IMG/VR virus record: IMGVR_UViG_3300025121_000282
Location: 250,887-314,886 of that record
Length of the DNA: 64,000 nucleotides
Strand: one strand, 5' to 3'
Shown here: one piece after another, positions 8,589 through 58,460 of the stretch
Layout: every line of letters begins with the position of its first letter
Position numbering within the stretch: position 1 is the stretch's first letter
Notes under the pieces: model-generated
Databases searched by the model: none
What the model was told of the DNA's origin: nothing
The model's input: the letters and a program-made list of their open reading frames with translations, nothing else
Program-made: the position numbers and the translations under genes

Positions 8589-9488
8589 TTAGAGGTTCCC
8601 AACAGCAACCACACCCCTACCAATGATACCGCCTAATTCATTTACTGTGTTTCCAATACCAGAAGTCTTGAAAGAATTAGGCACCCTAATCGATTGATCC
8701 AGCCTCGTGGTTCGATGCACTGTAAAACTTGCACTATAGTCGACAACATGTGGCATGTCTGCTGTCTCATTTATCTGGAACTCTGAAAATCTACCACTGT
8801 ACATAACACCATCATAAAACATGTTTACATAACCAATTTTATACGGGATTCTCGAATCTCCAGCAGAATTGTTGGAAGGTACAGAACCATCCACATAAAC
8901 ATTTCCGTTAGACCGGTATACTGCCACCAAGCTTTGTAAATTTCTCCAGGCAGCTGATCCATTTCTATGTGATCGGGTCAAACCACCATACCCATCTGGG
9001 TCGACACACACGAAACCACCAGTTTGACCGGATATCTTAATCTCGTCTAGGTTTTCGCCCCAGTGTTCTATTTTGTATTTTCTTGTGCGGGTCATTTGAC
9101 CCTCAGTTCTAACTTTTGATAAAGCAAAATCCAGGGTGGATGGGTTTATCAACAACACCAAAGTGGGCAGTGCTTCTATGGCGTCTATAACATCATTCAT
9201 GTTAGCGGGGACTGTGTTGTTGTTCCCTGTGTTGACAGCCTCTAGGTTTTCAGCCCTGGGATTTTTTGGCATAGATTTCCTGCCAAATCCACTATTGATG
9301 GCAGCTTTATTTATACCAACAGTTGACTCGGATACTGTAGACCTGGGCGGGGGCACCAATTTGAAAGCCATAGCGGCACTTTCAGTTCTGGAAGCGGCCA
9401 CGGGCCTCATGGCTGTATTGAGCCATTTTATCCCAGAATTCTCAGGAACCGGGACATTTTCTAAAGTAAATGATGTACTGTCTGCCAT
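8589..9488 (-). CDS. Tail tube initiator / baseplate protein, paralogue A
   Basis: INPS...EHWGENLDEI.ISGQTG...YSGRFSEFQINETADMP pattern shared with the adjacent gene; position after tape measure. Confidence 0.6.
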   Translation of the reverse strand: MADSTSFTLENVPVPENSGIKWLNTAMRPVAASRTESAAMAFKLVPPPRSTVSESTVGINKAAINSGFGRKSMPKNPRAENLEAVNTGNNNTVPANMNDVIDAIEALPTLVLLINPSTLDFALSKVRTEGQMTRTRKYKIEHWGENLDEIKISGQTGGFVCVDPDGYGGLTRSHRNGSAAWRNLQSLVAVYRSNGNVYVDGSVPSNNSAGDSRIPYKIGYVNMFYDGVMYSGRFSEFQINETADMPHVVDYSASFTVHRTTRLDQSIRVPNSFKTSGIGNTVNELGGIIGRGVVAVGNL

Positions 9489-9491
9489 GTC

Positions 9492-10109
9492 CTAAACCTG
9501 ACTATTCGAGTACACGGTTTGTATAACTATTTCCTCAACTTGAAAAGAAATAGAAAATGTAAACATATAAGGCCTAGAAGCATCCTCGGTCCATGTAAAC
9601 TCATTAAAGAATCCGTCGTATACACCCTGGTCAAAAGCCACTCTAATTCTGCCTGCCATATAAACAGAGCCATTTTCATCACGAATCAGGCCATTGTTTC
9701 TGTATAAGTCCAACAACCTTTTAAATTGATAGTTTGACAAAGTTTTGTGTCTAAGTGGGGCAGATTCATTGTTAAATGTGTGGGCAGACACCAACCCGTG
9801 CTCTACCGAAATAAATGCTCCCGTACCGCTCTCTATTTGAAAGATTTGTAGAGATTCGCCCCAGGACTGCTCGATCCATGCGCCTTTGGTGTTGAATGAG
9901 TCTACAACTTTAGACATCTGAGTACTAAACCCAGACGGGTTCACCCTCATATAAAGCGGGGGACTTACCACTGTAGTTAAATCTGGACCTATCACCCAAA
10001 ATACAAAGGGAATCCAGTCCCCGTTGACAGGTTGATCAAGTCCACCCTCATACTGAGTGGAGAGAGACTGTCGGGGGGCTCCCCTTATACCATGTCTACC
10101 GATGGGCAT
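9492..10109 (-). CDS. Tail tube initiator / baseplate protein, paralogue B
   Basis: VNPS...EQSWGESLQI...GTG...YDGFFNEFTWTEDASRP; immediately downstream of tape measure; ends in TAG in frame with paralogue A. Confidence 0.6.
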   Translation of the reverse strand: MPIGRHGIRGAPRQSLSTQYEGGLDQPVNGDWIPFVFWVIGPDLTTVVSPPLYMRVNPSGFSTQMSKVVDSFNTKGAWIEQSWGESLQIFQIESGTGAFISVEHGLVSAHTFNNESAPLRHKTLSNYQFKRLLDLYRNNGLIRDENGSVYMAGRIRVAFDQGVYDGFFNEFTWTEDASRPYMFTFSISFQVEEIVIQTVYSNSQV

Positions 10110-27101: not shown

Positions 27102-28196
27102 TTGACAATAGCACAGACACCACGAAGTACCATTGTGGAACATAACCAAGAAATCTGTCTGGTAGTCGGTGGGCCGCAGAAGCGATGGCAATGGATTGTC
27201 GAGTATCTCTCCAAAAACACCGGTACTAAAATCAGAGTGTGTGAACAAGGCCGCTTTTCTTTTGGTCGTAAGATCATCAACTCTTATGTACTGGTATTAA
27301 AAGATTTAATCGACCATAGATTCAAAAACGAGATTATTAAGTGCACTGGAACCGGATGTACACTTGTGTACTCAGACAGAACAAGACCGGGATTAATCAA
27401 GGCTTTTGAGATTATGGGTATAAGTAGCCTAGGACTTACTAGTACACACTCTAAAGAGGACAAGGTGGACAAGGTGGACAACATTGTGTTTGGTACTGAC
27501 ATAAATGAGTTGGTGCACGCCATCGCCAGTGGTACGAGTTGGTCACGATTGCACACCAAGCTGGTGCTGGAGTCGAAAGTAAATGTGGAACAAACTCCAT
27601 TTGTTGAACAAGTCACCAAGTGCGCCAAAGCAAACTGTCTAAGTATACCCAAAAACCCGCCCAACAGGTCACAGCCAAAAACGAAGATTGACCCAGAATT
27701 CTACCCAAACCTAGTACCGGAGGTATTACGGATTAAGGCTACCAACTCATGGATAGACACATTTCGCATTTTATACAATTCTGGCGTGCTACACCCCGAA
27801 TCCACACTGTCTGGATTTACACAGGGGATCAGAGCCGCCATTGCTAAAACTCCGGGTACTACTGTTGAGACTACTAGTGCCACTGAGACTGTTGTTCCAG
27901 ACAGACAGTACTCTGCCGTCGAGTACGACGAAGTCTTCAGTAAGTGGCACGAGGGGGAAGAGGCCCTCAAAGCTGCAAAAACTGAATTGGAAGAGAAATC
28001 AGCAGAGTTGCGCACACTGGAGGGCAAATTTGCTGCAGTTTCCATAAACCTTCAGATGATGACTAATAGGCTGAATGTCGCACCCACAGGCACTAAGCAC
28101 GACCCGATCTTTTTGAAAATGTTGGTCGCTTTGGAATCGTCTTGCACAGAGAGAGGCCCATTCCATGCTCTGTGCAAGACGATCTTGGAAGATTAG
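27102..28196 (+). CDS. Hypothetical protein, possible N-terminal DUF2325-like domain and C-terminal coiled coil
   Basis: LVVGG...VLVLKDLIDH resembles DUF2325; start codon uncertain. Confidence 0.5.
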   Translation: MTIAQTPRSTIVEHNQEICLVVGGPQKRWQWIVEYLSKNTGTKIRVCEQGRFSFGRKIINSYVLVLKDLIDHRFKNEIIKCTGTGCTLVYSDRTRPGLIKAFEIMGISSLGLTSTHSKEDKVDKVDNIVFGTDINELVHAIASGTSWSRLHTKLVLESKVNVEQTPFVEQVTKCAKANCLSIPKNPPNRSQPKTKIDPEFYPNLVPEVLRIKATNSWIDTFRILYNSGVLHPESTLSGFTQGIRAAIAKTPGTTVETTSATETVVPDRQYSAVEYDEVFSKWHEGEEALKAAKTELEEKSAELRTLEGKFAAVSINLQMMTNRLNVAPTGTKHDPIFLKMLVALESSCTERGPFHALCKTILED

Positions 28197-28942
28197 CCCT
28201 GCCATCCAGGAGGCGCGGGTACTGAGGCCGTACTATTTGGAAACGCCTTGGGGAGGGCCCGAACCTCTATAATCGGTACACCCCACGCCTTAAGTCTAGC
28301 ACGCACTCCGTAGTACAAAGAGAATACTTTGCATGGCATTGAGGTTGCCCTTTCGAAGTCTGTCTCCATTGTAACAAACTCCTTTTTGGCCCCGTATGCC
28401 GTACTAACTACAGGCGCTTTTTCCGTTGCTTCGATTGTGGTGCTATCAAATGTTGCACAACACTGAACAGTACCACCAATCGTTGTTTCCTGGTTATAAC
28501 CTCTTGTGTGTTCAGAAAACGCATTAGGCCCAGAAGACAGTGTCATGTTTGTTATGAACACGTTGGGCTTGACTTTTTCTTCAAAGATGGCAACCCCAAT
28601 AACTCCATTATTAGACGTGCCCATACCGCTTTGGTTGGTAAAGCTTTCTTCTTCAGAAGAAAATGTGAATGCAGCCACTTCCTGGTTGGTTCTAAGAAAC
28701 CCAGGTATGTCAATGGTCTGCCAGGGCCCAACCACATAACCAAGGCCATCGGGTGAAGCTTCTTTTCCATTCACTACGTTCACACCATCGACAGAGACAA
28801 CTACAAGTCTTCTTTTATTGACTTGGTTGCTAATTCTGATCTTATACTCTCCAGATAAAGGAACTTCAGAATAAAGGTTTTTGTTATGCACGATGACAGG
28901 TAGTTCTTTGCCATCTAAATTGATGCTTATTTTCAAGTCCAT
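28193..28942 (-). CDS. Conserved hypothetical beta-rich protein
   Basis: EYKIRISN..RRLVVVSVDGVNVVNG...GYVV...IPGF...AAFTF...GVIGVAIFEE; GAGGAG SD. Confidence 0.7.
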   Translation of the reverse strand: MDLKISINLDGKELPVIVHNKNLYSEVPLSGEYKIRISNQVNKRRLVVVSVDGVNVVNGKEASPDGLGYVVGPWQTIDIPGFLRTNQEVAAFTFSSEEESFTNQSGMGTSNNGVIGVAIFEEKVKPNVFITNMTLSSGPNAFSEHTRGYNQETTIGGTVQCCATFDSTTIEATEKAPVVSTAYGAKKEFVTMETDFERATSMPCKVFSLYYGVRARLKAWGVPIIEVRALPKAFPNSTASVPAPPGWQG

Positions 28943-30243: not shown

Positions 30244-30507
30244 TCACAACAATTTAAGTGACTCCATGGGCTGGTCTGTGGCAAAGGCAGTCAATTGATT
30301 GTTTAAGTCAGGTTCGTGCCACAGAACACACTTACCATTGGCGGGGACTGCCGAGATCAAATCTTGTTCTTTCGGCACACCATACACTATCACTGTACCC
30401 AGGTGCGGCCCATGGTTTAGTGCCCAGTGGTCCATAGCATGAAGAAGTTGTGCTGCTCTTTTACCCTCTGACAGGTCTTTTCTTGTCACAAAGTATAGTC
30501 TACTCAT
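30244..30507 (-). CDS. Peptidyl-tRNA hydrolase Pth2/PTRHD1-like protein (87 aa)
   Basis: LYFVTRKDLSEGKRAAQLLHA and EPDLNNQLTAFA motifs; ATG 30507 overlaps upstream TGA (ATGA coupling). Confidence 0.7.
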   Translation of the reverse strand: MSRLYFVTRKDLSEGKRAAQLLHAMDHWALNHGPHLGTVIVYGVPKEQDLISAVPANGKCVLWHEPDLNNQLTAFATDQPMESLKLL

Positions 30508-31184
30508 AAACCAAACCACTTGACGTCAGGACTATTTATTGCAATAAGTTGGTTTTCCAAATTTTCCAAATTTTTGGTTTCGTCTTTGTATTTGGTTTCT
30601 CTGTCAAGTCTGTAGCCTACTATGCCCGCAGACATTGAATTACATTTGTGAATCAATACCACGTCTGAGTATTTATTTAAGGAGTCCTCTAGGGACTGGA
30701 TTATACGTCTAGACTTGTTGATACTCTCTTGGACTAGCCTAGACGCCTCTCCTACAACATTTTCTTTGGAATTTATGGCTGCGGAATTCAGCCATAAACT
30801 GATAGCACCCTCAAGAAGTGTTCTGTAATCTTTGTCTAAACACGTACCAATAAGTTTGGACAAGGACTTAACATTCGGTTTGTCTTCACCGGCCTTAAGT
30901 TTAGATTCACACGCTTTGTATGGGGTATTGTTTAAAAAAGCTAGTGCTAGATGGTGTTCTCGGAGAAGAGAAGAATTGGGAATTCTGGATCTTAAACCGT
31001 GAGATTTATTTTTAGATTTGTCCAACCTACGTTGAAGACGTGCAACCTCTGCAGCTCCATTTGGTTGTTTTAGTTGTTTACGACAACCACGTATAGTGTG
31101 TTTCAGAGCGTAGATTTCTGTTTTCAGAAGTCTACGCGTGCAGATTTTTTCTTTTAGGGACGACTTGAGTGCTATCTTATCCAT
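30504..31184 (-). CDS. Basic helical hypothetical protein, first gene of Pth2-like operon
   Basis: AAAGGA SD; LREHHLALAFLNNTPYKACE motif; Lys/Arg-rich N-terminal coiled coil. Confidence 0.7.
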   Translation of the reverse strand: MDKIALKSSLKEKICTRRLLKTEIYALKHTIRGCRKQLKQPNGAAEVARLQRRLDKSKNKSHGLRSRIPNSSLLREHHLALAFLNNTPYKACESKLKAGEDKPNVKSLSKLIGTCLDKDYRTLLEGAISLWLNSAAINSKENVVGEASRLVQESINKSRRIIQSLEDSLNKYSDVVLIHKCNSMSAGIVGYRLDRETKYKDETKNLENLENQLIAINSPDVKWFGL

Positions 31185-31201
31185 GGTCCAATTCCTTTTG
31201 T

Positions 31202-31245
31202 TTGATGATTTAGAAAGAAACGCAACATCTTTTCTAAATCATCAA
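31202..31245 (-). promoter_or_regulatory. 15-bp perfect RNA hairpin between leader ORF stop and downstream Shine-Dalgarno
   Basis: TTGATGATTTAGAAA (31202-31216) pairs with TTTCTAAATCATCAA (31231-31245); 14-nt loop; no U-tract follows on the minus strand. Confidence 0.85.
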
Positions 31246-31301
31246 GGAGGACCACGGGCTAGGTGCAGCTACATTTCGGAAGTGGGATAATTGATTCTCA
31301 T
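31242..31301 (-). CDS. Putative leader/arrest peptide MRINYPTSEM-(UAG)-LHLARGPP
   Basis: ATG AGA ATC AAT TAT CCC ACT TCC GAA ATG TAG CTG CAC CTA GCC CGT GGT CCT CCT TGA TGA; RGPP is a RAPP/RAGP-type arrest motif; below the ORF track cut-off. Confidence 0.65.
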
Positions 31302-31307
31302 ACTTTT

Positions 31308-31336
31308 AATTTAATCACCCCATTGGTCATTGTCAA
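31308..31336 (-). promoter_or_regulatory. Sigma70-type promoter TTGACA-17-TAAATT placing +1 at or next to the leader ATG (leaderless mRNA)
   Basis: -35 at 31336-31331, -10 at 31313-31308, 6 nt before ATG 31301; no SD in front of the leader. Confidence 0.65.
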
Positions 31337-31382: not shown

Positions 31383-32111
31383 TCACACCTCTATCAACAA
31401 TTTTGGGTTGAATTTTGGGTTTTCTGATTGACGGGCATACCCGAACGGGTTACATACGAACCGGGTCAGCCCTAGCGTTTTATCTGTCGAGTCGTGTGTA
31501 TGCCCGTAGACCCAGAGCTTCGGAGTCACCAAAGTACAGTCATCGATTCCTCCGACGAAAAACGCATTAAGTTTGCTACCCTGCCAACGTTCAGTCACCA
31601 GATCGTTGTGCGGGATCATATGGGTAACAACCACGTCTGTTTCCATGACATTCTTTTGGATCATGTCCACGTCTCGGCGTCCACGTTCATAGACCCACGG
31701 TTCGAATTTGCGAATAGTTGTGAAATCAGCCATTGAGTCGCGCCCAAACTTCTTGGTGTACTGCTCAGGTTCAGGGAACCAAAGTGTACCACCAATAAAT
31801 CGCCGCCCACTGATAGTTACAGGTTCGTCCCGGAGAAGATAGATGTTCCCAAATTGGGAACACATGGCAGCAATCTCGGCCTCGGCGACTGCAGCCACGG
31901 ACCCATAGAATTCATGATTGCCGAGGGTGTATACTACATTTGCATATTTCTTCGAGAACGTGGTCAGGATCGTCTTCAAAGACCCACCTTGAAGGACGCC
32001 CACGTCTCCCGCGAGAACAGCAATGTCCGCGTCTGCCAAATCAGCAACGAGGCTTTCACCGTGGTCCCGGTGGAATTCTGCGTGGAGATCAGAAACAATC
32101 AGCAGTTTCAA
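31383..32111 (-). CDS. Calcineurin-like metallophosphoesterase
   Basis: SDLH, AGD, GNHE, THMIP and YGHTH motifs. Confidence 0.9.
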   Translation of the reverse strand: MKLLIVSDLHAEFHRDHGESLVADLADADIAVLAGDVGVLQGGSLKTILTTFSKKYANVVYTLGNHEFYGSVAAVAEAEIAAMCSQFGNIYLLRDEPVTISGRRFIGGTLWFPEPEQYTKKFGRDSMADFTTIRKFEPWVYERGRRDVDMIQKNVMETDVVVTHMIPHNDLVTERWQGSKLNAFFVGGIDDCTLVTPKLWVYGHTHDSTDKTLGLTRFVCNPFGYARQSENPKFNPKLLIEV

Positions 32112-33791: not shown

Positions 33792-35327
33792 TTACTGTCT
33801 AAATAACACAAACTTTTTCTTTTCTTTACCAAACACTTTTACGTACCCTTTTGATTCAGCAAACTCCTTCTCTGTCATATGGCATCCAACGGCATGGTTG
33901 TATAAAGTCTTTTTGTGCATCATCCAACCAGTCGTGTCTACGTACACATAATCAGGCTTGGTAGTGGAAACATGTTCCCAATTTGAAGCTTGGTAGACGA
34001 TGCCCTCATGGCCCACGGTAGTATCGGCAAACGAAACTATTGCCTTGGTTTCTGGAAATTGGTCCCAGAAGTGTTTGGCCGATCTTGCTAAAAACCAAGA
34101 CCCGAAATTAGGCTTGTGGCAGTCTGTTCTGATACAAAGTCTATCCAACTCCGACACTGTTTTTGGAGTAAGTCCTACTGAGGTGGACACCTCTTTTCTA
34201 ACAACAGGAGCGAACTTTGCCACTGCTATTAATTGGCCATCCAAGTAAGCCCCAAACATAAACTTTGCTTTACGACCACACTGGGCATAGTGCCAAGCTC
34301 TTAAAAATCTGTTACCCTCAGAGTGCTCTATAGGCTTGACAATTAATTGGTTAAACTCGAATTCAGTTATTTTGGACTCGCTGACACCAATTACAGACTG
34401 AATTTTATCTTGAACCAAATCAGGTATTAAAGTCTCATGCTCTTCTATACACAAAAGTAGTGAATCAGGGTTTGCAATTCTAAGATATGCTGATTTAGCA
34501 ACGTCCCGCCTTTGGTTATTCGGAAGGTTGTGCCAATAATCACCTTGTACTTCAATGTATATATTAAAATCCGATAAATACAGGTCAAAATTATACGGAC
34601 CCACAGATTTTTCTCTGGTGTATTTTATCTCAAGCAGGTCTAATACATCAGAAACCACTTTTTCAGGTTTAGACTGTCTGCCTGACCTAGAAAAGGCCTC
34701 TATACCAGCAGCTATTTTAGCCCTGTACTCTGGATTTTTAAATCTTTCTTTTGCCAATTCACTGTGTATCTTTTTGTATTCTGGGTTCTGGATTGCCAAG
34801 TCATGGTTAGCTCTCGCCTCAGGCGTGTGCATTACTGACACTTTTTCCCTGAAGTATTTGTCTGGGTCGGCTTTATAATCCGCCTTGTTTCGTTCCGACA
34901 CCAGCTGTTTATGCTGGTCTGACTGAAACATCTTGGTAATGCGGTCTTGCTGAAACTCCCTAAAATCTGGGTCTTCCCAAGCCTGTTTAGCTTGCTTAGA
35001 CCTTTGGGCTCTGCCATCTTCAGAATTGGCTATGGCACCCAATATTTTTGACTGGTTGCTGACGTACTCTGGATTCGCCCAGGCTTGCTTGGATTGCTTA
35101 GACCTCTGAGCTTTTCCTTGAGGACTCTTAGCTCTGCACGGGGAACACCAGTATTCCCCGCGTTTTCTCAGAGTTCTATTTACAATAGACCTCTGATTGC
35201 ATACAGACCTACCACAACACTGATAGACTACCCACCCTCTTTGTTTAGGGGTGGGTAATCTATACCCAAAGTCTATTTCGTTGTGCTCTTGGTCGGAAAT
35301 TTGTGCGTACAGTGTTGCTATATCCAT
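33792..35327 (-). CDS. PD-(D/E)XK (Vsr/DUF559-like) endonuclease fused to C-terminal Mom/Hef-like GNAT domain, N-terminal NUMOD3-like repeats
   Basis: SKPEK...YNFDLYL...IEVQGDYWH; FLRAWHY...ELDRLC...SFADTTVGHEGIVYQASNW; AQRSKQ-x-KQAW-x-x-P repeats. Confidence 0.7.
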   Translation of the reverse strand: MDIATLYAQISDQEHNEIDFGYRLPTPKQRGWVVYQCCGRSVCNQRSIVNRTLRKRGEYWCSPCRAKSPQGKAQRSKQSKQAWANPEYVSNQSKILGAIANSEDGRAQRSKQAKQAWEDPDFREFQQDRITKMFQSDQHKQLVSERNKADYKADPDKYFREKVSVMHTPEARANHDLAIQNPEYKKIHSELAKERFKNPEYRAKIAAGIEAFSRSGRQSKPEKVVSDVLDLLEIKYTREKSVGPYNFDLYLSDFNIYIEVQGDYWHNLPNNQRRDVAKSAYLRIANPDSLLLCIEEHETLIPDLVQDKIQSVIGVSESKITEFEFNQLIVKPIEHSEGNRFLRAWHYAQCGRKAKFMFGAYLDGQLIAVAKFAPVVRKEVSTSVGLTPKTVSELDRLCIRTDCHKPNFGSWFLARSAKHFWDQFPETKAIVSFADTTVGHEGIVYQASNWEHVSTTKPDYVYVDTTGWMMHKKTLYNHAVGCHMTEKEFAESKGYVKVFGKEKKKFVLFRQ

Positions 35328-37795: not shown

Positions 37796-39499
37796 CTAAA
37801 CTCTCCTAACCCACTTGGTTTTTGGCACCTCTGATACTGTACAGAGACCGGTATACTCTACAAACTGTCGTTCTGTCATATGGTTTGACAGTGCTTGATC
37901 ATACACAGTACGTTTGTGTATGTATCTCACTGTGACTGGGTCAAAATAATGATACGATTCCCCGGTCTGGCCCGCTTCAATAAAACTACAGGCTTTGTAC
38001 AAGCCACCAGAATCACCAACATTGGGGTCAGAAAATGAAACCAGTAACTTTAGCTTTGGGCTTTCTGATTTATAGGCACCAATTAACTTAGACATACAGT
38101 AAGAAGATAGATTATTCACATCCAGTCCAGACCTTACGCAAAACCGTCTAATCTCTCTGACACTACCTGGATTCAACTTACCCAGCCCCAGTTGCTCTGC
38201 GGTTTTTTTGACAGTTCCGTGTCGGGTTACACCACCAAATACCAGCAAACACACCAATGTGTCCTTAAAATAAGCCCCATAGGGAGAGGCTGCTGTCCCC
38301 AAAGTGCCCAAGTAATGATTGGTGGTTAGAAACACGTGGGCTTCTTTTAACGGAACAGGTCTAAACTCCAAGTCCGACAACTGAAATTGTATTGGTTCTT
38401 CAATGGCTCGCAAAATGTGATAGTCCAACACTTTACGAAGTCTTCCCAGATGCAGTTCATGCTCCCATAACCACACTAACTTATACTTTGAATACTTTTC
38501 TATGTATGTAGCTTTGGCCTTATCTCTGGGTGTTCCAGAGTACCCGTTGTCTTTAAAATTGTGAAGATAATCACCATGGGTCTCTATCAACAAATTGCAT
38601 AATGGTACATAAAAATCAAACGAGTATGGGCCCACCGTGAAACTGCGTTCGAATGGAACCTTATAGTGGGACTCCAAAATGGAGGCTACTATCCTTTCTG
38701 TAGTAGGGTTCTGTAATTTCTCTTTGACACCCGGGATGTCAAAACCAGATTCTGACCCGTATAATTTCAGTAAGGTAGTTCTGCGTTTAATGGCTTTACA
38801 TTTGGCAGACCCACAGGTTAACGGGTGGGCCTGGGTGTAATACGACATCTTGGTTTCAGAGGTATTGTCACACACATAACACTTATAAATTATGGTCTTT
38901 TCACACAGTGGGAATATTTTCGTGGCCTTGTACCCAAATTTAACAAACGTGGCATCGTCATCAGCCCATGCATAGTCTGGGGGCTTTCGTTTCGACAACC
39001 AAAAGTCATGCTTACTTTGTGTGGATTCTTCGCGAATCCAAGTAGCAGCCACAGGACTGCACAGTTTGCAGCACACTACTTTGTTGCTTCTGGATAGACT
39101 TTGCAAACTGGTAGTGTACTGCTCTAGGCAAAATTCACATACAGCTTCAACAGCTTTTTCTGACCTTGGAGACAGTGTGTCTAGGCCATACCCATGTTTG
39201 GCTATGGTCAACAAAGAGTCTGCCCCAGCGGGCCGTTTAAGTACACTTAATAAATAGTACTCTCTAGGTGTTGTTTGTTTCTGCCTTACCCAATGAGATT
39301 TTAACTGATCGCAGCCCGAACAGGCATCTGGCGGAACGCGTCCAGGTTTGGAAAACTGATATTTCTTCCTCTCAAACACTTCTAAACAGAAATCGCATTG
39401 CACCACTACAGGTTTCTTAGACTGTGGCGCTAAGTCACTGTACCGATATCCGTATTTCTCAACAGTCAAGTCATCTTGGTGCATACCTGCATTATACAC
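37796..39499 (-). CDS. PD-(D/E)XK endonuclease fused to Mom/Hef-like GNAT domain, three N-terminal Zn-ribbon repeats
   Basis: K-x-GY...S-x-K-x-V...CxxC repeats; YSFDFYV...IETHGDYLH; FLTTNHYLG...EIRRFC...SFSDPNVGDSGGLYKACSF. Confidence 0.7.
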   Translation of the reverse strand: MYNAGMHQDDLTVEKYGYRYSDLAPQSKKPVVVQCDFCLEVFERKKYQFSKPGRVPPDACSGCDQLKSHWVRQKQTTPREYYLLSVLKRPAGADSLLTIAKHGYGLDTLSPRSEKAVEAVCEFCLEQYTTSLQSLSRSNKVVCCKLCSPVAATWIREESTQSKHDFWLSKRKPPDYAWADDDATFVKFGYKATKIFPLCEKTIIYKCYVCDNTSETKMSYYTQAHPLTCGSAKCKAIKRRTTLLKLYGSESGFDIPGVKEKLQNPTTERIVASILESHYKVPFERSFTVGPYSFDFYVPLCNLLIETHGDYLHNFKDNGYSGTPRDKAKATYIEKYSKYKLVWLWEHELHLGRLRKVLDYHILRAIEEPIQFQLSDLEFRPVPLKEAHVFLTTNHYLGTLGTAASPYGAYFKDTLVCLLVFGGVTRHGTVKKTAEQLGLGKLNPGSVREIRRFCVRSGLDVNNLSSYCMSKLIGAYKSESPKLKLLVSFSDPNVGDSGGLYKACSFIEAGQTGESYHYFDPVTVRYIHKRTVYDQALSNHMTERQFVEYTGLCTVSEVPKTKWVRRV

Positions 39500-58387: not shown

Positions 58388-58460
58388 AGGAATTAGATGT
58401 GAGGAATTAGATGTGAGGAATTAGATGTGAGGAATTAGATGTGAGGAATTAGATGTGAGG
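58388..58460. repeat. Tandem repeat, 14-bp unit AGGAATTAGATGTG x5 plus 3 nt
   Basis: Exact copies starting 58388, 58402, 58416, 58430, 58444; intergenic, just upstream of the fibre gene. Confidence 0.95.

Follow-up and report, generated by a model that had tools for sequence, protein, structure and literature searches.

Introduction

Small ORFs that end in an R-[AG]-P-P core form a family of arrest-peptide leaders that includes SecM-secA, ApdA/ApdP, CruR, and the Streptomyces RAPP/RGPP uORFs. They lie directly upstream of the gene they regulate, and the stalled ribosome disrupts an mRNA structure that hides the downstream SD (PMC12992588, PMC10951233, PMC7897499, PMC9426467). Within this family, RGPP gives the most robust arrest known, is refractory to EF-P, and is the most depleted tetrapeptide in bacterial proteomes (PMC12992588). 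The inputs described so far are secretion, membrane insertion, metals, and antibiotics. In a separate line of work, phages that encode suppressor tRNAs were proposed to use stop-codon recoding (code 15) to time gene expression, with in-frame TAG codons lying inside many late or lysis protein genes (Borges et al., bioRxiv 10.1101/2021.08.26.457843).

Here, we examined a 64-kb stretch (the window) of the 315-kb genome of a giant phage, in which a tiny leader frame carries a UAG stop codon upstream of RGPP, just before a gene of unknown function. In contrast to the RAPP-like leaders, this frame is interrupted by a conserved UAG, so that arrest could occur only after nonsense suppression; the peptide is about 18 residues long, it has no signal or membrane segment and no obvious pulling-force release, and it lies in a phage. 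Like the code-15 phages, this phage encodes a tRNA(CUA), but the window is in standard code, and the single in-frame TAG with a proposed function sits in a regulatory leader.

Three other systems share parts of this logic. In prfB (RF2) autoregulation and in amino acid attenuators, a codon in a short upstream or early frame serves as a sensor of its own decoding factor. However, prfB uses a +1 frameshift at UGA inside the gene itself, and attenuators sense charged sense-codon tRNAs and act on transcription terminators, whereas here UAG read-through would lead to peptide-mediated arrest and SD unmasking. Engineered switches with a UAG placed in the tna or trp leader also require a tRNA(CUA) to translate the leader beyond the inserted stop (reviewed in PMC6412442, section 6), but they are synthetic, act on Rho-dependent transcription termination, and use orthogonal tRNA/synthetase pairs; the present leader is natural, and its proposed mechanism is translational and arrest-based. 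Finally, in mammalian AMD1, stop-codon read-through delivers ribosomes to an arrest peptide (PMC13025110). That system is eukaryotic, lies at the 3′ end of a gene, and represses its own mRNA by queueing, with no dedicated suppressor tRNA and no SD unmasking.

Results

We first verified the anatomy of the leader, all of which lies on the minus strand. An earlier note, made from the sequence alone, had described a promoter followed closely by a leader ORF with an in-frame UAG, an RGPP motif, and a hairpin beside the downstream SD; this observation is confirmed, and every element is present. The −35-like hexamer TTGACA (31336-31331) is followed by a 17-nt spacer, the −10-like hexamer TAAATT (31313-31308), 6 nt, and an ATG (31301-31299). 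The first part of the leader ORF (31301-31272) consists of this ATG plus nine sense codons (MRINYPTSEM); it has no SD and is putatively 5′-terminal (leaderless). It is followed at codon 11 by TAG (31271-31269), by a second part encoding LHLARGPP (31268-31245, with RGPP at 31256-31245), and by tandem TGA TGA (31244-31239). A perfect 15-bp hairpin spans 31245-31202, with arms at 31245-31231 and 31216-31202 and a 14-nt loop. Its 3′ arm ends 2 nt before AAAAGGA (31199-31193), of which AAGGA (31197-31193) forms the SD of a 226-aa gene (31184-30504), 8 nt before its AUG.

We found that the SD is not merely beside the hairpin, as the earlier note had placed it. The helix extends outward, so that the RGPP codons are themselves the anti-SD: the segment CCGUGGUCC plus UCC (31257-31246), the same bases as the Arg-Gly-Pro-Pro codons, is predicted to pair with GGACCAUGG (31189-31181), which contains the start codon, and with the GGA of the SD (31195-31193). 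The start codon (31184-31182) is paired with the Arg codon CGU, and in the free RNA the probability of being unpaired is 0.00-0.02 for G, G, and A of AGGA. The 15-bp hairpin serves as an inner stem that clamps the anti-SD next to the SD.

We next asked whether this arrangement could arise by chance. The hairpin is one of only two perfect inverted repeats of 15 bp or more in 64 kb, and the leader RNA folds at −39.9 kcal/mol, compared with −24 for shuffled sequences (z = −4.6; 0 of 200 shuffles fold as well). RGPP occurs only once in the six-frame translation of the whole window, at this site. The order ATG..TAG..R[AG]PP arose in 2 of 200,000 composition-preserving shuffles of the window leader, and of 23 upstream regions examined in the window, only the target carries an ATG..TAG ORF with an arrest motif. 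The promoter matches the consensus at 10 of 12 positions, but the number of promoter-like sites in the region equals the chance expectation (22 found, 22.3 expected); the promoter therefore rests on its position and on its conservation in the homologues, not on its score.

To test the arrangement for conservation, as the earlier note had proposed, we searched for relatives of the 226-aa protein. It is a near-orphan: DNA and protein searches of GenBank phages found no relatives, and near-identical strains of the same phage (loci L002-L010) all have an identical leader and so carry no comparative information. Its only distant homologues (P0006, P0007, and P0008; about 27% identity; loci L011-L015) have the same upstream layout: a promoter-like site, a putatively 5′-terminal ATG, seven codons, TAG (codon 8), seven codons, and RGPP in frame. 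TTGACG sits at the same relative place as the window −35 in L012 and L013, TAGGAT follows 16 nt after it, and the ATG lies 7 nt farther on. The frame reads MFDSHHT-TAG-xxxPRSRGPP, and GUCCUCC is complementary to the SD GGAGGAC. TAG and RGPP are conserved in frame in L011-L015, and leader DNA keeps GTAG-N10-CCCGT-(0 or 6 nt)-GGTCCTCC, so the indel is in frame. The motif arose in 250 and 65 of 200,000 shuffles of the L011 and L013 leaders, respectively. Two features of the window are not shared. The homologues have a different, GC-rich inner hairpin in place of the 15-bp stem, and the stops after RGPP are not conserved, the frame instead staying open into the main ORF.

The substitutions among L011, L012, and L013 carry a coding signature across the stop. 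In the leader frame, five of eight variable codons are fully synonymous (Asp, Ser, Ser, Arg CGG/AGG, and Pro), compared with 1/7 and 0/7 in the other frames. The three nonsynonymous codons are the linker right after TAG, and in the conserved blocks variable codons change only synonymously. The CGG-to-AGG change breaks a predicted base pair but keeps Arg. However, some of the synonymous sites also lie in a predicted hairpin loop, and for these an RNA-level explanation is not excluded.

Both lineages encode a tRNA with anticodon CUA upstream on the same strand. In the window, ARAGORN and Rfam (45.9 bits) identify it at 33788-33714, 2.4 kb from the leader. A second, unrelated-looking tRNA(CUA) lies 0.5 kb from the leader in L013 (L013:755-832; also in L014 and L015). 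By comparison, none of 16 tRNAs in 0.99 Mb of unrelated loci reads UAG. In 58 phage loci around Mom-like genes (642 kb), we found no further leader, no other occurrence of ATG..TAG..R[AG]PP, and no other tRNA that reads UAG.

We then examined whether TAG is used as a sense codon more widely. TAG is a genuine stop in both lineages, ending 13 of 69 ORFs in the window and 2 of 3 in L012. Standard code gives long contiguous ORFs, and recoding TAG merges no adjacent ORFs in the 64 kb examined. The 13 TAG-terminated ORFs have no nearby back-up stops, which is awkward if suppression is efficient.

To examine how ribosome position would affect the structure, we folded the leaders of the window and of L011, L012, and L013 under hard constraints. 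A ribosome with UAG in its A site leaves the SD paired in all four leaders (P unpaired 0.00-0.02 for its core bases) and the AUG paired in the window. A ribosome arrested at RGPP raises SD accessibility to 0.95-1.0 in L011-L013 and frees the AUG in the window, although in the window model the SD re-pairs weakly after arrest (P unpaired 0.08-0.47).

Other classes of leader were not supported. A T-box riboswitch was rejected because there is no Rfam match at gathering score, or at E<=10 on the leader, in either the window or the homologues, and no conserved UGGN partner for the tRNA 3′ end. An intrinsic terminator or attenuator was rejected because the hairpin is AU-rich and is followed by ACAAAAGGAA rather than a U tract; a terminator scan did not list it. 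The idea of a promoter or leader cassette repeated in the window was also rejected.

Searches for a third lineage in viral and genome collections were negative, and L011-L015 count as one, so the comparison rests on two lineages. A metagenome scan with an alignment confirmed only the window itself, the window protein having served as the confirmation query, and genome and viral scans with a further alignment found nothing new. Pattern scans for CACACGTAG..GGTCCTCC and GTAG-N10-CCCGT..GGTCCTCC returned only random coding-region matches plus the window phage, and anticodon-arm probes for both tRNAs gave random matches. Among other candidate protein relatives, P0005 is a spurious cadherin-repeat match, and P0009 and P0010 match only the foreign C-terminal part of the chimeric P0008.

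Discussion

We propose, with moderate confidence, that this locus is a translational ON-switch gated by amber suppression, a SecM-like arrest leader whose input is a phage suppressor tRNA competing with RF1. In this view, a sigma-70-type promoter makes an mRNA that starts at or next to the leader AUG, and in the free RNA a nested structure locks the 226-aa gene off, with the bases that encode Arg-Gly-Pro-Pro paired to the SD and start codon and clamped by an inner hairpin. If RF1 terminates at the UAG, the ribosome would sit too far upstream to touch the anti-SD, and the gene would stay off. If the UAG is decoded, the ribosome would arrest at RGPP, the state known for RAPP/RGPP peptides, and would physically occupy the anti-SD and about 10 bp of the hairpin, exposing the SD and AUG for a second ribosome. 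Output would then report the ratio of suppressor-tRNA decoding to RF1 termination, and the tRNA would in effect be a trans-acting activator, or a timer, of this gene. The gene is thus probably switched on only when the tRNA reads through the stop, a control logic that has not been described in nature.

The interpretation offered in the earlier note is partly supported. Its core idea, that an in-frame UAG gates access of the ribosome to an RGPP arrest site whose occupancy unmasks the downstream SD, passed the conservation test that the note itself had set. Its 15-bp hairpin, however, is only a lineage-specific inner stem, and its link to a peptidyl-tRNA hydrolase is not supported. Our analysis establishes the sequence elements themselves, the predicted sequestration of SD and AUG, the conservation of the layout and of tRNA(CUA) linkage in a second lineage, and a coding-type substitution pattern across the TAG. 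The transcription start and leaderless initiation, the charging and activity of the tRNA and hence suppression, arrest at RGPP in so short a peptide, and activation of the downstream gene are all inferred. Since the leader AUG has no SD, its translation would depend on leaderless initiation in an unknown host. Moreover, the whole peptide is only 19 residues, with no hydrophobic segment, and the nascent chain at arrest would be only 17-18 residues, whereas N-terminal context can abolish RxPP stalling (PMC10951233).

The best-surviving alternative, although unlikely, is a purely RNA-level element: an untranslated 5′ UTR whose helix of roughly 28 bp hides the SD and AUG and is opened by RNase III cleavage, temperature, a small RNA, or a protein. 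The ATG, TAG, and RGPP would then be by-products of an anti-SD, since CCUCC necessarily reads Pro-Pro in one frame. The strong predicted sequestration in both lineages fits this view, GGUCCUCC is exactly what an anti-SD should look like, some variable sites lie in a predicted hairpin loop, and long helices over ribosome binding sites in phage mRNAs are classic RNase III targets. However, it does not explain the conserved ATG 6-7 nt after a −10-like box, the conserved in-frame TAG, the Arg codon kept by a change that breaks a pair, the synonymous-only change in the MFDSHHT and PRSRGPP blocks, the in-frame 6-nt indel, or shuffle frequencies of 1e-3 or lower. Above all, it does not explain the tRNA(CUA) gene next to the leader in both lineages.

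Slightly less likely still is an ordinary short uORF that ends at UAG without read-through, in which translating and terminating ribosomes open the outer helix and so modulate initiation at the main AUG, with RGPP a coincidence and the tRNA linked for an unrelated reason. In L011-L013, the outer helix contains the UAG itself: CGUAGGU pairs with ACCUACG in codons 3-5 of the main ORF, so a terminating ribosome would disturb the structure, and the pre-TAG peptide MFDSHHT shows synonymous-only change. Nevertheless, with a ribosome placed at the UAG the SD stays fully paired in all four leaders, synonymous-only change continues after the TAG in the same frame, and RGPP, a strongly avoided motif (PMC12992588), is kept in frame in both lineages. 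Linkage to tRNA(CUA) would be an unexplained coincidence.

It is also doubtful, although compatible with the same leader mechanism, that the physiological input is RF1 activity, with RF1 depleted, inhibited, or modified during infection or by a defence system and the tRNA a constant partner that makes the read-out possible. Because UAG decoding is a competition between RF1 and tRNA(CUA), the leader, as inferred from its anatomy, cannot distinguish the two inputs, and stop-codon sensing of a release factor occurs in prfB/RF2. However, no RF1-related or RF-inhibitor gene was recognised in the window, and it is the tRNA gene that co-occurs with the leader. Equally improbable is programmed read-through to an N-terminally extended isoform, with the window copy a decayed form: although the leader ATG is in frame with the main ATG in all four leaders (39, 38, 38, and 36 codons), no stop intervenes in L011-L013, and indels restore the frame, a good SD precedes the internal ATG, homology between the lineages begins exactly at that Met, RGPP inside a protein-coding extension would be selected against (PMC12992588), and the window lineage ends the frame right after RGPP with two stops yet keeps all other features.

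A further reading, which we consider slightly more likely than not, is that the tRNA and the leader form a dedicated trans-activator/cis-sensor pair, in which the tRNA acts as a regulatory molecule that turns on a specific gene by read-through-dependent ribosome arrest in a phage that otherwise uses the standard code. This would be the first natural switch that measures nonsense suppression, and it could be an evolutionary stepping stone between acquisition of a suppressor tRNA and full stop-codon recoding of late genes. If so, suppressor tRNAs in standard-code phage genomes, an open puzzle, would gain a function as timers or activators read out by a leader rather than as code changers, and the arrest-peptide family would gain a new input class, the competition between stop-codon decoding and release factor. 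The element would also be a compact, portable natural part of about 120 nt plus one tRNA that does what synthetic biologists built by hand with UAG-containing leaders, and it would make the long-standing idea that recoding evolved as a means of gene regulation directly testable with simple reporters.

As for the genes under putative control, the 226-aa protein is predicted to be all helical (pLDDT 68), with no significant PDB match. The downstream 87-aa ORF (30507-30244, minus strand), which the earlier note had linked to a peptidyl-tRNA hydrolase, has no Pfam (E<=10), NCBIfam, or PDB sequence match, including none to PTH2; its PHROG hit, phrog_1866, is of unknown function, its AF2 model is unusable (pLDDT 42), and the downstream gene is not conserved in L012. 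This ORF overlaps the stop of the 226-aa gene by 4 nt, so the two are probably cotranslated.

Genomic Context and Anatomy of the Leader

We first placed the leader in its genomic context. The window is part of a 314,886-bp viral contig from a groundwater metagenome (IMGVR_UViG_3300025121_000282 = Ga0208375_1000024), which has 45% G+C and is densely coded in the standard genetic code; reading TAG as sense merges no adjacent ORFs, and searches of GenBank phages returned no relatives. TAG ends 13 of 69 ORFs, and the next in-frame stop after these lies a median of 30 codons away (14 for TAA and 11 for TGA), giving no sign of back-up stops despite a resident tRNA with anticodon CUA, a putative amber suppressor. 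One TAG-terminated ORF of 205 aa (9492-10109, minus strand) is in frame with the next ORF (8589-9488), one codon away, and amber read-through would fuse the two into a protein of about 505 aa. However, some TAA- and TGA-terminated neighbors are also in frame, and the arrangement may be due to chance.

The leader lies in a 198-nt gap between two minus-strand genes, a metallophosphoesterase gene upstream (31383-32111) and a 226-aa ORF downstream (30504-31184) with no Pfam, PHROG, or NCBIfam match. The tRNA with anticodon CUA lies 2.4 kb upstream on the same strand (33788-33714), 3 nt after a Mom-like gene. Directly upstream of this tRNA, two Mom-like/HNH-like paralogs (33792-35327 and 37796-39484) flank an 807-aa gene with a PurZ-like adenylosuccinate-synthetase domain (phrog_1211), an arrangement that looks like a DNA base-modification module.

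All of the sequence elements described in the earlier note were present. TTGACA (31336-31331) is followed by a 17-nt spacer, TAAATT (31313-31308), 6 nt, and an ATG at 31301. The frame then reads MRINYPTSEM, TAG (31271-31269), LHLARGPP (with RGPP at 31256-31245), and TGA TGA. A perfect 15-bp hairpin (31245-31231 and 31216-31202) ends 2 nt before AAAAGGA, and the ATG of the 226-aa gene is at 31184. The hairpin is one of two perfect inverted repeats of 15 bp or more in 64 kb, and RGPP occurs once in all six frames of the window, at this site. In contrast, the score of the promoter-like site alone is not above chance. We also noted a 10-codon ORF (31298-31330, minus strand) whose ATG lies inside the promoter spacer and whose TGA overlaps the leader ATG (ATGA). 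On read-through transcripts from the upstream operon, this ORF could couple translation into the leader, although it has no SD and may be a chance occurrence.

Folding of the leader revealed a feature that the earlier note, which placed the hairpin beside the SD, had missed: the RGPP codons are themselves the anti-SD in the predicted structure. The helix extends outward, such that CCGUGGUCC (31257-31249) pairs with GGACCAUGG (31189-31181), putting the Arg codon CGU opposite the start codon AUG, and UCC (31248-31246) pairs with the GGA of the SD (31195-31193). The 15-bp hairpin is the inner stem of this nested structure of about 28 bp, which has an energy of -39.9 kcal/mol (z = -4.6 against dinucleotide shuffles). 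In the free RNA, the SD and AUG are predicted to be essentially always paired.

Comparison with Distant Homologs

We next asked whether the layout is conserved. Strain variants of the same phage from many samples (contigs L002-L010) have an identical leader and are uninformative. Several of these independent metagenome contigs begin inside the intergenic region, with L006, L009, and L010 starting at about 31373-31358 and two Logan contigs, L007 and L008, starting at exactly 31286; these assembly breakpoints may reflect a strain variant, the hairpin, or coverage. The 226-aa protein is a near-orphan: a word-indexed search of 5.8 billion proteins found only itself, and an exhaustive phmmer search of 1.84 billion representatives found one true distant relative, P0006 (27% identity over residues 1-157). 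A further search added P0007 and P0008. P0008 (L013:1461-1967) is a chimera that keeps only the N-terminal ∼90 residues of the leader-associated family, its C-terminal part being shared with P0009 (L017:5001-6107), which sits next to a Thg1-like gene, and P0010. The promoter-like site, leader, and N-terminal domain seem to move as one module.

The short contigs that carry these homologs (L011, L012, and L013-L015; 53-65% G+C) all share the same upstream layout. TTGACG is followed by 16 nt, TAGGAT, 7 nt, and an ATG (L011 starts at TAGGAT, and its -35 region is off the contig). The codons TTC GAY TCY CAC CAC ACG, TAG, three variable codons, and CCC CGT TCN (C/A)GG GGT CCT CCN then read MFDSHHT-stop-xxxPRSRGPP in one frame. 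GUCCUCC is complementary to the SD GGAGGAC of the main ORF. The two lineages even share GTAG-N10-CCCGT-(0 or 6 nt)-GGTCCTCC, so the indel between them is two codons. This comparison, which the earlier note had set as a test of its proposal, was positive for ATG-n-TAG-n-RGPP. It was negative for the stop after RGPP, because in the homologs the frame runs open into the main ORF, and also for the 15-bp hairpin, which is replaced by a GC-rich inner hairpin.

To examine whether the stretch after the TAG is translated, we compared the codons between the ATG and the end of RGPP among L011, L012, and L013. Five of the eight variable codons are fully synonymous in the leader frame (GAC/GAT, TCC/TCT, TCT/TCA/TCG, CGG/AGG, and CCC/CCA), compared with 1 of 7 and 0 of 7 in the other two frames. 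The three nonsynonymous codons are exactly the three that follow the TAG. The CGG-to-AGG change destroys a predicted G-C pair of a small hairpin but keeps arginine. Purifying selection on a peptide that spans the stop codon is the simplest reading, although some of these sites are in a loop and the evidence is suggestive rather than conclusive. Composition-preserving shuffles give ATG..TAG..R[AG]PP at frequencies of 1.3e-3 (L011), 3e-4 (L013), and 1e-5 (window).

Linkage to a tRNA with Anticodon CUA

The contigs L013, L014, and L015 also carry a tRNA with anticodon CUA (L013:755-832; Rfam 55 bits) about 520 nt upstream of the leader on the same strand. This tRNA is not obviously homologous to the window tRNA beyond general tRNA features. 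As controls, none of 16 tRNAs in 0.99 Mb of unrelated loci reads UAG, and in 642 kb of phage loci around Mom-like genes, only the window phage has a tRNA(CUA) or an ATG..TAG..R[AGSD]PP leader. TAG is a real stop in the second lineage too, ending 2 of 3 ORFs in L012. Two lineages whose proteins are 27% identical, therefore, share a promoter-like site, a leader ATG, an in-frame TAG, RGPP, a predicted anti-SD, and a neighboring tRNA that would act as an amber suppressor.

Predicted Effect of Ribosome Position

To investigate how a ribosome on the leader would affect the start region, we masked a ribosome footprint (-15 to +15 around the first P-site base) and refolded the RNA. With UAG in the A site, the SD stays paired in all four leaders (P unpaired 0.00-0.02 for its core bases), and the AUG stays paired in the window. 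With the first Pro codon in the P site, SD accessibility rises to 0.95-1.0 in L011-L013. In the window, the AUG becomes free, whereas the SD finds a weak alternative partner (0.08-0.47). Folding of the free RNA of the homologs (L011:14-160, L012:226-372, and L013:1353-1493) further predicted that the putatively 5′-terminal AUGUU of the leader can pair with AACAU in codons 9-10 of the main ORF and that the UAG itself lies in a 5-7-bp helix with codons 3-5 of the main ORF, suggesting a kinetic (cotranscriptional) window for leader translation.

Previous work indicates that RGPP gives the most robust arrest among RAPP-like cores, is refractory to EF-P, is the most depleted tetrapeptide in most bacterial phyla, and occurs in uORFs upstream of diverse genes (PMC12992588). 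A minimal RxPP can reportedly suffice, but upstream residues modulate or abolish stalling.

Interpretation

We favor, with moderate confidence, a SecM-type arrest leader whose access is gated by a UAG. In this view, RF1 termination at the UAG would leave the gene locked, whereas decoding by the phage tRNA(CUA) would send the ribosome onto RGPP, where it would stall on the anti-SD and open the ribosome-binding site; the gene would report suppressor-tRNA activity relative to RF1. The sequence elements, their conservation, and the tRNA linkage come directly from our analysis, and SD and AUG sequestration is a folding prediction. The transcription start and leaderless initiation, charging of the tRNA, arrest in an 18-residue chain, and activation itself are inferred. 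The evidence is computational but unusually coherent, and it rests on only two lineages. The interpretation put forward in the earlier note, read-through of the UAG leading to RGPP arrest and unmasking of the SD, is supported in part.

Alternative readings appear unlikely. The leader may be an RNA-only SD-sequestering element, such as an RNase III site or a thermosensor, or, slightly less probably, a plain uORF that ends at UAG, but both leave the tRNA linkage and the in-frame conservation of RGPP unexplained. More doubtful still is read-through to make an N-terminally extended isoform, which also leaves the tRNA linkage unexplained. Equally doubtful is the same switch reporting RF1 rather than tRNA levels.

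The proposed mechanism works like the RAPP/RGPP arrest leaders (SecM, ApdA/ApdP, and CruR), but the leader lacks two of their defining features, an uninterrupted frame and a localization signal. The phage shares a tRNA(CUA) with recoded phages (bioRxiv 10.1101/2021.08.26.457843) but not their in-frame TAGs in protein genes. The logic resembles prfB autoregulation. It also resembles engineered UAG-leader switches (PMC6412442) and AMD1 read-through arrest (PMC13025110). Full-text literature searches found no natural prokaryotic or phage system with this layout, and no Rfam family matches the leader.

Downstream Products and Other Features of the Window

The earlier note had proposed that the switch is wired to a peptidyl-tRNA hydrolase, a link that is not supported. 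The 87-aa downstream product (30244-30507, minus strand) has no PTH2 profile, NCBIfam, or PDB match, and its structural model is unusable. Its N-terminal stretch (RKDLSEGKRAAQLLHA) recalls the PTH2 peptidyl-tRNA hydrolase motif, but its only detectable relatives are phrog_1866 (unknown function) and the C terminus of a hypothetical protein of Xanthomonas jumbo phage Xoo-sp13. Moreover, the gene downstream of the L012 homolog is unrelated. The 226-aa product itself is predicted to be an all-helical protein without fold relatives (pLDDT 68).

Elsewhere in the window, a perfect 16-bp inverted repeat (28136-28183) lies where two convergent genes meet (27102-28196 on the plus strand and 28193-28942 on the minus strand) and is probably a bidirectional terminator or a processing site. 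An intergenic region at 58388-58460 contains about five tandem copies of a 14-nt unit (AGGAATTAGATGTG).
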